Source of the DNA: Dendrobates tinctorius | Taxonomy: Eukaryota | Reading direction: 5' to 3' | Length of the DNA: 64,000 nucleotides | NCBI RefSeq assembly: GCF_039654945.1 | Contig: NW_027361792.1 | Coordinates: forward strand, 1,612,001 to 1,676,000 | In this document: positions 7,218 through 12,733 of the stretch, in pieces | How the letters are laid out: each line of letters starts with the position of its first letter | Position numbering within the stretch: the stretch's first letter is position 1 | Notes under the pieces: model-generated | The model's database searches: none | The model's input: only the letters and a program-made list of their open reading frames with translations | What the model was told of the DNA's origin: nothing | Position numbers and translations under genes: made by a program

Positions 7218-8905
7218 TTACACTAAATATCTTGAAAAATAGCCCGTTTGCTGGACTCTGCACTTTTGGTGCATTTTTACTCTATGGTTTTACATAATCA
7301 GCCTGAAAAAAATGTAGTTACAATATGGGTTTTTTTTAAGTGCAGAATAAAATCTTTTCTGTACTAAAATAAACGCAATAAACAACAAAGTTTCCAACCT
7401 GCACCAAAGATGCAATGTATAAAGGGAAAACGCAGCCAAAACAATGCAGCACAAAGTGCAATAATCAGGAACACCGTGTTGTGCTGCAGATGAAGCAGAG
7501 AACGTGCGGCTATAAATCAGAAAATACTGTGTGAACTGAGCCTTATACTGACCCTGGTGCTAAATTGTCCCAATTCTGACATCTGTGAAACTCTGCCACA
7601 GACCGGTCGGGGTCTCCTGACAACATGTGGGCATATACGAGGCTGTGGCGTTTGGGTCATGAGCCTCGCGGCCGCTCTGGCCCACGACCGTGGTTCTCAA
7701 TTCGCCAGGATTCTTCAGTCAAATTAATGGGATCAGTTCAGGTAATCAGACCAATAATTGCGACCATAACACTAGTGATGCCCCCCGCCTCTAGGTCTGC
7801 GCTGTGCATATTACCGCGGGTTGCAAATGCAAATCTGGTTAATTTCCACAACTGAAAGGCCTGATGGGGACTTGCAGCCTTTCAGTCCCGTGGCCCCCGG
7901 ACGCTCAGGGTGCTGCATTATTTGGTGCGGTTTTCCTGCGACATCGCCCTGAAGGCGGGCACAGAGAAATACGGAAACGAATCCCAGAAAGGAGGAAGGA
8001 CTTGTACAAAGAATGATGCAACAGGATAAAAATCAAGATGACCAAGGACGGGCACAGATAAGAGTTAACTCTTTCAGAGTCACCTCCGCTGTGTCTTCTG
8101 GAGGCTGTAGGGACCCCCTTCCTCTGGGTCGTTCACAGTATGAATCTCCTTCGGCTGTCAGGGCACGATGGGAGTGGTAGTAGGAGAGCCAGAGGATGTA
8201 GCTCAGTGGTTCTGGCTTGTAGCGCTCTAGTTGATGCAAAACTACAACTCCCATCATGCCCTGACACCCGACAGGGCTTGCTGCCGCTACCCTGCAGTAA
8301 TAGCGGACTGTATTAACTCCTGCAGGTTATTTGCTACGGAATTAGTGAGACCAAAGTACAGAACAAGACGCTATCAGAAAATCCCATGCAATACAGAGGT
8401 GTTCGAGGATACGAAGGTCACAGTCTCATCTGAAAGATAGGGCAGAATCTCACACACAACCAATCACTGGGAGGCTACCGAGGTTGGTTGTACAATTAAT
8501 ACACAATCTAATTGGTTGCAACAGACAACACCTCAATTCAGTCTCTTGGTGCAAAACTCAAAAGTCCGGGCGGAGAAAGGAAAACAGTGAAGTTTCTCCT
8601 CCCCCCGACTGTGGGCAGCCATGATACCTTCCTGTGTGATCCCTTTTCACATTGTCTCGGTGCCCTCCTGAGGGTCCTCACCCTTTACCCCCCCCCCATC
8701 CTGGCATCAGTTGCGATATGTACCACGGGGCCCATGGCTGCCAGGTTGGACTCTTCTGCGATGTTGGGTGGTCTTCACTGTTCATACGCTTTACCCTTGT
8801 ACCCGGCGGCTGCTCCTGGGATCTTCTAGCGAGTGATTCCAGACGAGTCATACAAGGTTCGTCTCAGTCTCATGGGCAATCAGTGCCTGCCTGTGGCTCT
8901 GTACA

Positions 8906-9130
8906 TTACAGCCCTTGGCTCACGGCGTCACAATTCTTCCAGCTTTTCAGCTTCCACCTGACAACGTCCGGCAGAGGAAGCAGATCAGCAGAGTCTTTCC
9001 TTGTCAGGTTACGAGCCAACGTACTGAGGCATCGCTCCTCCAGAGATGGCAAAGTGCAGCAGCGAAGACCCAGGGCCATCTCTGTGCCAGGGCTGGTGGA
9101 AGAAGCCATGGGAAATAATGGCAGCTGCAC
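8906..9130 (-). CDS. SPSB3-like last exon (end of SPRY + SOCS box)
   Basis: ctcag|GTG acceptor; BC-box SLEERCLSTL and Cul5-box LPLP; TAA stop. Confidence 0.87.
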   Translation of the reverse strand: MQLPLFPMASSTSPGTEMALGLRCCTLPSLEERCLSTLARNLTRKDSADLLPLPDVVRWKLKSWKNCDAVSQGL

Positions 9131-11280
9131 CTGAGAGGTGAGGATAACGGTCACACACCATCATACAATCATGTCCTAAATCCTTTCTATTATAGCTGTG
9201 ATGCTCTGCGTGTCCTGACCCCTTTCTATTAAAGCTGCGATGCTCTGCGTCTCCTTACCTACCCCTTTCTATTAAAGCTGCGATGCTCCGCGTCTCCTGA
9301 CCCCTTTCTATTAAAGCTGCGATGCTCCGCGTCTCCTGACCCCTTTCTATTAAAGCTGCGATGCTCCGCGTCTCCTGACCCCTTTCTATTAAAGCTGCGA
9401 TGCTCCGCGTCTCCTGACCCCTTTCTATTAAAGCTGCGATGCTCCGCGTCTCCTGACCCCTTTCTATTAAAGCTGCGATGCTCCGCGTCTCCTGACCCCT
9501 TTCTATTAAAGCTGCGATGCTCCGCGTCTCCTGACCCCTTTCTATTAAAGCTGCGATGCTCCGCGTCTCCTGACCCCTTTCTATTACAGCTGCGATGCTC
9601 CACGTCTCCTGACCCTTTTCTATCACAGCTTTGATACTCTATGTGTCCTGACCCCTATCTATCTTGGCTGCGATGCTCTGCGTGACCTGACCCCTTTCTA
9701 TCTCGGCTGTGATGCTCTGCGTGTCCTGACCCCTTTCTATCTCGGCTGCGATGCTCTGCGTGTCCTGACCCCTTTCTATCACAGCTGCGATGCTCTGTGT
9801 CTCCTGACCCCTTTCTATTACAGCTGCGATGCTCTGCGTGACCTGACCCCTTTCTATCACAGCTGCGATGCTCTGCGTCTCCTGACCCCTAACACAGCTG
9901 TGATGCTCTGCATGCATTATATTACACTCTACACGGTGACCCATGACATTACCTTGTGGAGTCCGGTGAAGGCTACCCCCAGACTCTCTCTGTCTTTGTA
10001 AAACGTCAGCGTCCCATCCTCCATGTTCAGGTGCAGGCCGATCAACGTCCCCGCCTCGTAGAATGGCTCGGTGTACTGCCTGCTGCTGCCCCCGTGCCAG
10101 ATGTTGCCTTTATAGGACAGACCCCAGCTGTCGGCGTCCAGTCCTGGAAATAGTCACATGGATCATTACTGAGGGGAATAAGGGGGGATCATGCAATGTT
10201 CCCATCAGTAGGAGCCCCCGACCCTTGTACCATATGGACCCTCTATTACCGATGGCCGGGGGTCCTGATAGCTTTGTTAGCTGCCTGGACTTGGGAGGAC
10301 CCCATCTTACCCAGTAGATTGATATACTGGAAGCTGCCGGCACATAGAGCGGCTCTGCTGGTGCCAACACCGACCATGACGGACAGTCCAGACGGCGGCT
10401 CCAGGAACTCAATCTCCCAGTAATGTTCTCCTTGTAGGAAGCCTGGACGAGAAGAACCGAAAAATGTAATAAAACGGGAAGAAGTGATAAGAGAATCAGA
10501 CACGAGGGAGCGATTAAGTAGCGAAACCTAGAATTGACCTTGTACGATTCCACTGATCAGACGATCGGCCACGGGTCGCTGAAAGGAGACGTCTGTTCTC
10601 ACAACTGCGTCCTCCGGCCCGGTTTAATATTCAAAACCCGCAAAAATCTGTGCTTCACTCTCCATCCCAGGTCCAGGGCTGAGTCTCCTCTGCTGCTCCC
10701 AGTGTCTATTATTGTCTGCAGCGCTGAGGTCACGTCGACAGCACTGCAGGCAATCAGTGGCTTGTGCCGTCTACGGTCAATTAATAATTTTCACTATTTT
10801 TTTTACTCAGTCTCCATAGGGAATATGAACCTGCAATGATTTCCATATACTACAATATCTCTGGCTCAGATACAAAGGAGGATAATGAGGTCTTTATTGG
10901 GCTCCCACCTGCCATCACAACCCACCAGCTCCCCACGATCATACAAGCCGATGCCGGAGGAGTCTGCGAGTGGCGTTCAGTCTGCTCCTTGCTGAGGACA
11001 CACGAGTGCTGGGTCGAGCTGAAAATTCAGGGGTTTGGGGAGGTTGGGAAAGATGGTTGACGACTATCCTACATGCATGGGATACTAAGAAATGAAGCCG
11101 AGTATCCTCGTGCTTCTCACCCTCATCCCCCCGCACTCCGGCGGTACCGCCACTTTCTGACACAGGATCCGTGTGGAAATACACTTCTTTGCGACCATGA
11201 GACAGCTCCACCGACGGGCACAGGTCATTTGCGTCCCACAGCCAGTTTTTCTTCACAAAGCCACATGGCATGGGGGGCAT
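8906..11280 (-). CDS. SPRY domain + SOCS box protein (SPSB3-like paralogue); coding exons 11280-11121, 10442-10311, 10143-9953, 9130-8906; 235 aa
   Basis: All introns are GT-AG with consistent phases (1,1,0) and there are no stops. Product MPPMPCGFVKKNWLWD...VYFH...GTAGVRG...GEHYWEIEF...VMVGVGT...LLGLDADSWGLSYKG...GTLIGLHLNMEDGTLTFYK...LFPMASST...SLEERCLSTL...LPLP parallels the SPSB3 SPRY domain and SOCS box. Confidence 0.88.
9180..9905. repeat. 39-bp minisatellite, about 18 copies, filling the last intron of the SPSB3-like gene
   Basis: Unit GACCCCTTTCTATTAAAGCTGCGATGCTCCGCGTCTCCT. Confidence 0.95.
9953..10143 (-). CDS. SPSB3-like coding exon (SPRY)
   Basis: tttccag|GA acceptor, AAG|GTAATG donor; LDADSWGLSYKGNIWHGG...GTLIGLHLNMEDGTLTFYKDRESLGVAFTGLHK. 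Confidence 0.88.
10311..10442 (-). CDS. SPSB3-like coding exon (SPRY)
   Basis: ccag|GC acceptor, G|GTAAG donor; FLQGEHYWEIEFLEPPSGLSVMVGVGTSRAALCAGSFQYINLL. Confidence 0.88.
11121..11280 (-). CDS. SPSB3-like coding exon (SPRY N-terminal part)
   Basis: Acceptor gtag| just before 11293, ATG at 11280, donor G|GTGAG; WLWD...VYFHTDP...GTAGVRG. Confidence 0.85.
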
Positions 11281-12109
11281 CACCAGCCCGGCCCTACAAT
11301 CACAAATAAAACATTTAATGGGCATTTGAGTCATAACTATACAGGGGATCACTATTAGATGGCTGAGACCCCCGATGGCGGAACGGACGACTTGTGCCCT
11401 TATTTGAAAGCTGTGGCGGTTGTGACCTACAGGTCGGACTGTTGGAATACGTGGGTGCAGCGCTGGCGATCATTGGGGGTCTTAGACCAGACTTGCCTTG
11501 GTTTAGTCATCACCTATATTGTTAGAACTGGAATCCCCCTTAGCCCCCATCTCCCTTTTTGACATCGCACGTACGGGGGTCTCGGACACAGATATAGGGT
11601 CTTGTTTATAAATACAGGTGTTTTAGGCTGGGGCATCACAAGGTCACATGCGATTTGCTGTTGTATGACTATTTAAGGCTGCGACTTTGGCCACAACGCA
11701 AGTCGCATTGTGCCGCCGCAGCAGCAACGTAGTACAACACAGGCGAGTCGCGTCACATTGCAATCTGTGAGGCACAGCGAATAGAAAGTCATCAAAAATC
11801 TAATCAGTTCTTTTTGCAACTTTCTTGCCGCGGTTGCAGCACCTCGCAGGCTGCAATGTGACACGATTACGTTACAATGTAGCAGCGACAGAATGACCAG
11901 TGTCGTGGAAGACGCCACCAGCAAAAGAACATCCGACACATGGAAACATTAGCGACTCTGAGTAGCAGTCGGTCGCAATGTGATACCATAGGAAATGTGA
12001 TGTCGTAATGCGATGCACGGCGCCGAGTCTTATCTGTCCTTAGGTAACACCCCAGAGAGAAGACCCATCAAACAGCACCCCAGATCTCAGTGTCCTGGCA
12101 TCTCCTCAC

Positions 12110-12147
12110 CTGGTGTCCGTGTGCTGCCGGCCTCGTCCACCTCTCAT
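12110..12147 (-). CDS. Putative upstream in-frame first exon of the SPSB3-like gene (MRGGRGRQHTDTR)
   Basis: ATG at 12147; strong CAG|GTGAG donor, phase 2 and in frame with the acceptor at 11293; CCAAT-type motifs near 12248 and 12295. Confidence 0.45.
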
Positions 12148-12485
12148 GATCGTCCACCTCTCGTGGCCGTCTCTCTGGTGACAGGTTCTCCTGCTTTGCT
12201 TTTCTCGAAATTTGCGCCCATCACTCCCGGAGGCGTTTCTGACTCCGCCAATAGGAAGCAGATATGATTCCAGCCCCTCAAAGGCATTTATGTGATTGGC
12301 TGCAGCGGCTAAAAACAACAGACACTCCCTGGGGCATTGTCCCATTAACCCTTAGGGCACCACACTGAGAGGAACCTGCCTGCCCCTCATAGTACTGCCA
12401 ACATTAACCCTTCCTCTCCTGCAGAACACAGCGCATAGGAACACATCCAGGTCTGGATCAGTCCTCCCCGCTTTTACATAGGTAC

Positions 12486-12733
12486 TAGTGATGAGCGAGT
12501 ATACTCGTTGCTCGGGTTTTTCCGAGTATGCTCGGGTGTCCGCCGAGTATTTTGGCGTGCTAGGAGATTTAGTTTTCCTTGTCTCAGCTGCATGATTTGC
12601 GACTTGTAGACAGGCTGAATACATGAGGGAATTCCCTAACAAACAGGCATTCCACACATGTATTCAATCTGTCTCCGAGCACGCCAAAATACTCGGAGGA
12701 CACCCGAGCAACGAGTATACGCGCTCATCACTA
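12486..12733. mobile_element. hAT-like MITE
   Basis: TIRs TAGTGATGAGCG / CGCTCATCACTA; 8-bp TSD ATAGGTAC / ATAGGTGC. Confidence 0.8.

Follow-up and report, generated by a model that had tools for sequence, protein, structure and literature searches.

A compact SPSB3-like gene beside ATG13 in a poison frog is a likely member of an ancient clade distinct from human-type SPSB3

A compact gene between ARHGAP1 and ATG13

We analyzed a 64,000-nucleotide stretch of Dendrobates tinctorius DNA (contig NW_027361792.1, positions 1,612,001 to 1,676,000; hereafter 'the window'), in which a minus-strand gene at 12147..8906 encodes a protein of the SPSB family. Its neighbors are ARHGAP1 (plus strand, last exons at 340–702) and ATG13 (minus strand, last exons from 24531 upward), the same two between which the initial annotation of this DNA had placed it. 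Translation of the minus strand over 8800–12300 yields five exons and a 759-nucleotide (nt) open frame of 252 amino acids (aa), while an alternative start at a methionine in exon 2 would give 235 aa. All of the introns are GT-AG, with donors GTGAGG, GTGAGA, GTAAGA and GTAATG and with AG acceptors that follow pyrimidine-rich runs. The parts of the gene are as follows.

12110–12147, minus strand: coding part of exon 1, running from Met1 to base 2 of codon 13; ATG at 12147, donor GTGAGG
11121–11293, minus strand: exon 2 (173 nt), N-terminal SPRY/B30.2 strands including the FHTDPVSESGGTA loop; AG/GT sites, spliced contigs
10311–10442, minus strand: exon 3 (132 nt), SPRY strands with the EPPSGLSVMVG loop, which holds the equivalents of human SPSB3 positions 160 and 162; splice sites, spliced contigs
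9953–10143, minus strand: exon 4 (191 nt), SPRY core; Pfam PF00622, E 3.7e-12
8906–9130, minus strand: coding part of exon 5, final SPRY strands, putative SOCS box and stop codon (8906–8908)
9017–9046, minus strand: BC box SLEERCLSTL, aligned with the SPSB3 BC box in PDB entry 8okx_B
8969–8980, minus strand: Cul5-box core LPLP, a motif in exon 5

The B30.2/SPRY domain of the SPSB family is present, as indicated by a Pfam match and by a predicted beta sandwich (AlphaFold2) that resembles SPSB structures. Exon 4 alone matches PF00622 with 46.8 bits, and the orthologue P0001, which is 93% identical to the window protein and on which the fold prediction, PDB comparison and full-length Pfam scan were carried out, matches with 66.6 bits. 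The internal exons (173, 132 and 191 nt) are identical in size in Ranitomeya variabilis, Eleutherodactylus coqui and Xenopus tropicalis, the 132- and 191-nt exons recur in sharks, and the start codon at 12147 is kept in R. variabilis and E. coqui.

Expression was examined by placing Logan contigs of four public runs on 8700–12400. Three of these runs (X1, X3 and X6) represent two closely related organisms, and most placed contigs are 90–99% identical to the window. Their contigs confirm four introns (joints 9130/9953, 10143/10311, 10442/11121 and 11293/12110), and each stretch that they skip reads GT..AG on the minus strand. Two of the joints, 11293/12110 and 10442/11121, are present in both X1 and X6, and one X6 contig (record 22, 1034 nt) crosses all five exons, from the 3' untranslated region (UTR; 8818) to the 5' leader (12305). 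Because these contigs are spliced they do not come from genomic DNA, and the gene is therefore expressed, as seen in close relatives. The remaining run, X2, bears the same species label as the runs of the window DNA and contains contigs that are 100% identical over exon 5 and the 3' UTR, exon 4 and the exon 1 region, two of which end within a few bases of exon borders; no splice joints were seen in this own-species run, where depth is low.

Coding sequences recovered by mapping orthologous proteins onto their loci gave pairwise ratios of nonsynonymous to synonymous divergence (dN/dS) of 0.21–0.27 against R. variabilis (dS 0.12–0.14), 0.17–0.20 against E. coqui and about 0.15 against X. tropicalis, for which dS is saturated. 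The same ratio between two cartilaginous fishes, Callorhinchus and Chiloscyllium, was 0.17. The gene is thus under purifying selection (dN/dS 0.15–0.27), and we conclude that it is a working gene whose compact product comprises a SPRY domain and a probable SOCS box. The initial annotation had described an intact gene of this kind, 235–252 aa long and carrying SLEERCLSTL and LPLP; the five GT-AG exons, the Pfam SPRY match and the spliced contigs bear that description out.

Compact and long forms of SPSB3

A word search with exon 2, in its 176-aa open frame, retrieved proteins of hyloid frogs annotated as 'SPSB3-like', among them one of R. variabilis that is 95% identical over exon 2. A profile built from these hyloid proteins recovered compact members of 220–260 aa in all anuran families sampled and in salamanders, and likewise in lungfish, coelacanth, gar, bowfin, sturgeon, bichir, teleosts, sharks and chimaera. 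Compact invertebrate members were found in amphioxus, echinoderms, molluscs, one nemertean and cnidarians, and the unnamed matches can be assigned to groups of frogs, sharks, teleosts or invertebrates. Reptiles, birds and mammals were not represented among the high-scoring compact forms in this search of annotated proteins; the mammal-type SPSB3 of echidna (350 aa) scored far lower, with 39% identity.

Using the echidna protein as the query instead returned hundreds of long SPSB3 proteins (∼350 aa) from mammals, birds, reptiles and all three amphibian orders and, among fishes, from coelacanth, bichir, teleosts ('spsb3a'), chimaera and shark. Compact and long forms occur together in X. tropicalis, X. 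laevis, axolotl, coelacanth, Callorhinchus and eel. They also occur together in the genome from which the window is taken: an intact long SPSB3 lies on another contig (G000:C201:3117049-3134983) and is 82–97% identical to X. tropicalis SPSB3 over residues 1–360. That gene surfaced with echidna SPSB3 as the query and not with exon 4, which matched only itself in its own genome (E <= 0.001); the window gene is therefore single-copy.

Public annotation already names the gene 'SPSB3' or 'SPSB3-like', with NCBI applying plain 'SPSB3' to the members of Xenopus laevis, Bombina, gar and shark. A literature search found no functional study and no gene-family paper that separates the clades described below; 'spsb3a' occurred in no paper and 'spsb3b' in three, one of them a preprint in which it is confined to gene lists for qRT-PCR. 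The gene is thus not undiscovered, having been predicted and named, yet we found no functional work on it.

Phylogeny and age of the split

Maximum-likelihood trees that included the spliced window protein were built under LG+C20 PMSF and rooted on the SPSB1- and SPSB4-like genes of the same genome. The compact vertebrate proteins, the window protein among them, form one clade (A; support 95–100) and the long vertebrate SPSB3 proteins another (B; 98–100), and both hold cartilaginous as well as bony fishes. Amphioxus forms the sister group of vertebrate clade A (99/95), which is nested in a larger group that also holds echinoderm, mollusc and nemertean genes. In the final tree, clade A together with its invertebrate members (amphioxus, echinoderms, molluscs) received 97/97, and clade B with its own (priapulid, mite, bee, nemertean, bivalves) 100/100. 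The bee protein joins B, with which it shares an N-terminal cysteine motif and indels, and it scored 208 bits against B versus 136 bits against A. Neither the window protein nor any other member of clade A has the N-terminal cysteine extension of clade B, in agreement with the initial annotation, which had remarked on the missing long N-terminus.

A third clade (C; 98/99) is restricted to invertebrates (oyster, Batillaria and Diadema), and no vertebrate member was present among the matches listed. These trees give no firm order of divergence among the three clades and the cnidarian genes; the SPSB3-like genes of cnidarians are nearest to A by sequence and branch outside all three clades. Anuran members of clade A sit on a long stem branch of 0.5–0.7 changes per site.

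An approximately unbiased (AU) test that included the bee rejected a single clade of vertebrate A plus B (p 2.7e-6); leaving out the bee and Diadema gave a borderline result (p 0.052). A profile of B plus the bee protein was also run on a representative library of 1.84 billion proteins, clustered at 50% identity. Approximately 145 of the best 150 library clusters were B-like, and many of them were 50–59% identical to vertebrate B and carried the cysteine motif; the named ones include a priapulid, a nemertean (Tubulanus), a mite and unionid mussels. In one mussel, Potamilus streckersoni, a B protein (P0421) occurs alongside an A-like one (P0072). The presence of A and B in one mussel, together with the invertebrate membership of each clade, places the split between them, as judged from protein sequences, before the divergence of protostomes and deuterostomes.

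Two further features of the related clades were observed in the alignments. Within the N-terminal extension of clade B, four cysteines and two glutamates are invariant from bee to mammals (alignment A3), a set that might form a metal-binding motif. Clade C (P0099–P0115; P0110 is from oyster and P0111 from Diadema) has a loop reading F-H-P-N/W-S-N-G-T-A, a lysine at position 262 in human SPSB3 numbering, and a SOCS box that Pfam can detect.

Conserved neighbors and apparent loss in amniotes

Gene order in X. tropicalis and gar is ATG13 (plus), the clade-A gene (plus) and ARHGAP1 (minus). The window contains the same arrangement on the opposite strand, so that tree, exon sizes and synteny with ATG13 and ARHGAP1 all identify the window gene as a clade-A orthologue. 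The shark and chimaera loci have other neighbors within 10 kb (a SLC26-type transporter and a dual-specificity phosphatase). The clade-A gene has thus been situated between ATG13 and ARHGAP1 since at least the bony-vertebrate ancestor.

Clade A appears, from the annotated proteins surveyed, to have been lost in amniotes (reptiles, birds and mammals). In human, ATG13 and ARHGAP1 are direct neighbors, a layout consistent with a clean deletion of the intervening gene. The initial annotation had proposed an old paralogue that was retained in this lineage and lost in human. The age of the paralogue and its loss agree with the trees, with the synteny in gar and Xenopus and with the lack of amniote protein matches; the restriction to this lineage does not stand, as the paralogy is far older than the vertebrates and the gene, already annotated as 'SPSB3' or 'SPSB3-like', is present in all of the anamniote jawed vertebrates that were sampled.

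The SOCS box and a proposed mechanism

Comparison of P0001 with the PDB using phmmer matched SPSB3 in the cGAS-SPSB3-Elongin B/C complex (8okx_B) with an E value of 2.8e-36 over residues 48–254, a range that includes the SOCS box. The AlphaFold model of P0001 (pLDDT, the predicted local confidence, 86.7) comprises a SPRY sandwich followed by three C-terminal helices, and blocks across the predicted three-helix SOCS region (residues 221–260) have pLDDT values of 87–92. A Foldseek search with this model returned 8okx_B as the best match (E 3e-20), followed by SPSB1, SPSB2, SPSB4 and GUSTAVUS. Across clade A, with frogs among its members, the leucine and cysteine of the BC box reach at least 90% conservation; the LPLP motif does so in clade A, its invertebrate relatives and clade B. 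The amphioxus orthologue passes the Pfam SOCS_box model (PF07525) at 28.6 bits. When the exon 5 piece of the window was scanned by itself, Pfam returned no SOCS_box and only chance matches to Imm31 and TEP1_N.

These features suggest a mechanism in which the C-terminal three-helix SOCS box would use its BC box to dock on Elongin B/C and its LPLP motif to dock on CUL5-RBX2. A short degron would be bound by SPRY loops that lie on the opposite side of the sandwich. With such docking and degron binding the protein would act as a substrate receptor of a cullin-5 RING ligase (CRL5). On the strength of sequence and modeled fold, we infer that the window protein is probably such a receptor and predict that it binds Elongin B/C and CUL5.

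The substrate pocket

Residues of SPSB3 that contact cGAS have been described (Ser132, Tyr160, Thr162, Tyr197, Arg213, Thr259 and Arg262; PMC10972748), as have residues of SPSB1 that are required for DINNN binding (Arg77, Thr111, Tyr129, Trp217 and Gly218; PMC2923778). Human SPSB3 entered the analysis as published residue numbers and as PDB chain 8okx_B; its numbering was set through the 8okx_B alignment (offset 82), and 18 sequences represented clade B. The residues at the seven contact positions are as follows.

132: S in clade B; S in clade A and its invertebrate relatives; S in the window protein
160: Y in clade B; in clade A, Y in most vertebrates but S in most anurans, with various residues in the invertebrate relatives; S in the window protein
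162: T in clade B; T in most of A, L in most amphibians; L in the window protein
197: Y in clade B; Y in clade A and its invertebrate relatives; Y in the window protein
213: R in clade B; P in clade A and its invertebrate relatives (also in SPSB1 and SPSB4); P in the window protein
259: T in clade B; T in clade A and its invertebrate relatives; T in the window protein
262: K or R in clade B; acidic in most of A, G in most amphibians; G in the window protein

Clade B is invariant at all seven positions if either K or R is allowed at 262, whereas the window protein (S, S, L, Y, P, T, G) keeps three of the seven and so does not have the contact set of clade B. It likewise lacks the signature of SPSB1, SPSB2 and SPSB4, keeping one of the five DINNN-binding residues (T, L, Y, S, P): Arg77, Thr111, Trp217 and Gly218 of SPSB1 are replaced by Thr, Leu, Ser and Pro. 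With the basic residues at 213 and 262 missing, and four of the DINNN residues missing as well, the substrate is probably neither cGAS bound in the manner of SPSB3 nor a DINNN protein, which lends support to the different substrate suggested by the initial annotation. In an alignment of 62 clade-A proteins, conservation of Ser132, Tyr197, Pro213 and Thr259 is 90% or more, and this pattern points to a conserved binding site in clade A.

The 5' leader, untranslated regions and repeats

The 5' UTR reaches at least 12305 (X6 record 22 covers 12109–12305), and the 3' UTR runs below 8700, since X1 record 1 and X3 record 15 continue through that position. The X1 transcript contig extends ∼1.2 kb past 8700, giving a long 3' UTR directed toward the 3' end of the convergent ARHGAP1. 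Two repeats were mapped within the gene.

12134–12171, minus strand: tandem duplication of 17 nt in the 5' leader, extending across the start codon; R. variabilis and E. coqui lack it
9182–9890, no strand assigned: minisatellite of 39 bp x 18 (92% matches) that fills much of intron 4; excluded from the mRNA by the 9130/9953 joint

The duplication shifts a conserved upstream ATG (at 12221; 12219–12221) out of the frame of the main open reading frame (ORF), and the upstream ORF in the window finishes as an ATGA overlap with the main start at 12147. R. variabilis has its upstream ATG in frame, and this accounts for the longer 263-aa model given by NCBI for that species.

Contigs of the public runs stack at high depth on the flanks of the intron 4 minisatellite, which indicates that its unit belongs to a dispersed, transcribed repeat family. 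A stretch of intron 2 (10684–10807) combines a high summed depth with numerous loose ends in every run, and is probably a transposon-derived repeat that bears no relation to the gene. Directly upstream of the 5' leader lies a stretch (12470–12600, beginning tagtgatgagcgagtatactcg) that resembles the terminal part of a repeat widespread in frog genomes.

Weighing of the alternatives

We consider it likely that the window gene is a working poison-frog member of an ancient clade, clade A, that is distinct from human-type SPSB3, and that its product would use the CRL5 receptor mechanism outlined above. Several observations weigh against this view or parts of it. Expression in the species itself is represented by low-depth, unjoined exon contigs, and the runs are presumed to be RNA. 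The apparent loss in amniotes is an absence among annotated proteins and not the outcome of a genome search. Anurans have changed the pocket at 160 (Y to S), 162 (T to L) and 262 (E to G) on their long stem branch, so that the frog protein may bind another target than fish and invertebrate members do; these changes hint at a shift of specificity in frogs. Finally, the Pfam SOCS_box model does not match the frog proteins, and the gar orthologue reaches 18.6 bits, below the threshold of 23.5. Membership among SOCS-box proteins is therefore assigned by alignment and fold.

That last result, together with the long anuran stem branch and the lack of a Pfam match on the exon 5 piece, would also be expected if the SPRY domain were functional and the frog SOCS box had drifted away from Elongin B/C and CUL5, leaving a ligase-independent binder or competitor. 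We regard this as unlikely: the BC-box leucine and cysteine and the LPLP motif have stayed conserved in frogs as in the rest of clade A, the three confidently predicted helices align with the Elongin-bound SOCS box of 8okx_B, and vertebrate SPSB3, itself a binder of Elongin B/C, is also mostly without a precomputed Pfam SOCS_box match. A decaying or unexpressed pseudogene is hardly credible and is refuted as far as can be read from the DNA; the leader duplication and the intron 4 minisatellite do indicate local instability, but the gene has an open reading frame, canonical splice sites and a dN/dS of 0.15–0.27, and fully spliced transcripts occur in relatives. The initial annotation had raised the prospect of neutral evolution (dN/dS near 1) without expression, and the same values and transcripts dispose of it.

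The remaining alternatives concern the relationship to SPSB3. The members of clade A in X. laevis, Bombina, gar and shark bear the plain name 'SPSB3' at NCBI, as they would if the window gene were simply the species' sole SPSB3 orthologue in shortened form; the intact long SPSB3 on contig C201 of the same genome, and six further vertebrates with both forms, refute this and leave it practically no probability. The initial annotation had itself admitted this outcome and that of a gene already characterized; the former is answered by the contig C201 gene and the latter by a literature in which we found no functional study. Clade A could instead descend from a vertebrate-specific duplication of SPSB3 (in the 1R/2R genome duplications), with clade B as the fast-diverged copy that amniotes kept. 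Such an origin would account for cartilaginous and bony fishes in both clades and for the long stem of clade B, and without the bee and Diadema the AU test leaves a vertebrate A plus B clade not clearly rejected (p 0.052). It is nonetheless very unlikely in view of the more than 100 B-like clusters (at 50% identity), whose named priapulid, nemertean, mite and bivalve members are 50–59% identical to vertebrate B; the same N-terminal cysteine motif on most of the top-scoring invertebrate B-like proteins; the bivalve with both A and B; the placement of invertebrates within B (100/100) and A (97/97); and rejection with the bee included (p 2.7e-6).

Significance

Returning to the reading of clade A as an ancient and separate group, we lean, if only slightly, toward a broader proposal in which the label 'SPSB3' would hide three subfamilies of bilaterian age. 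Clade A would have a conserved pocket and hence a conserved degron, amniotes would have dropped A and kept the cGAS-directed B, and A would in effect add a fifth receptor to the vertebrate SPSB set, with a substrate of its own. If true, that receptor could be studied in Xenopus and zebrafish.

SPSB3 has lately become prominent as the receptor that removes nuclear cGAS, and the name 'SPSB3' in work on fishes, frogs or invertebrates may pick the wrong gene: many invertebrate and several fish and frog 'SPSB3' annotations belong to clade A or C and do not carry the cGAS-contact residues. Recognition of clade A as separate, ancient and selectively maintained identifies a putative CRL5 adaptor distinct from SPSB3, and provides a clean case of apparent gene loss at the base of the amniotes, from between an ATG13/ARHGAP1 pair that is still adjacent. 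The finding is one of evolution and annotation and reveals no new mechanism.

Comparison with known systems

The closest counterparts of the window gene are the clade-A orthologues of X. tropicalis (XENTR_v10010739), gar, Callorhinchus and Branchiostoma (∼230 aa), with an identity of 65% to Xenopus and a clade-A median of 57%. Internal exon sizes, the compact N-terminus and the conserved pocket residues are shared with them, as are the ATG13 and ARHGAP1 neighbors in Xenopus and gar. Anurans differ from other members of the clade by their own pocket changes at 160, 162 and 262 and by a SOCS box that is further from the Pfam consensus.

SPSB3 proper (clade B) is the receptor of the CRL5-SPSB3 ligase for nuclear cGAS and SNAIL. 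It has a multi-exon coding region and the plan that is also predicted for the window protein, in which a SPRY sandwich precedes a SOCS box whose BC box reads S-L-x-x-x-C and whose Cul5-box core is LPLP, but is only 38–41% identical to the window protein and belongs to a different clade and a different locus. The window protein lacks the ∼100-aa N-terminal extension that bears the conserved cysteine motif, and keeps a three-residue D-P-V loop that is missing in clade B.

SPSB1, SPSB2, SPSB4 and GUSTAVUS are receptors for the (D/E)(I/L)NNN motif. They have the domain plan and fold predicted for the window protein (Foldseek E ∼1e-15), are ∼32% identical to it and form the outgroup in every tree; the x-P-V loop and the tyrosine at the position of SPSB1 Tyr129 are retained in the window protein.

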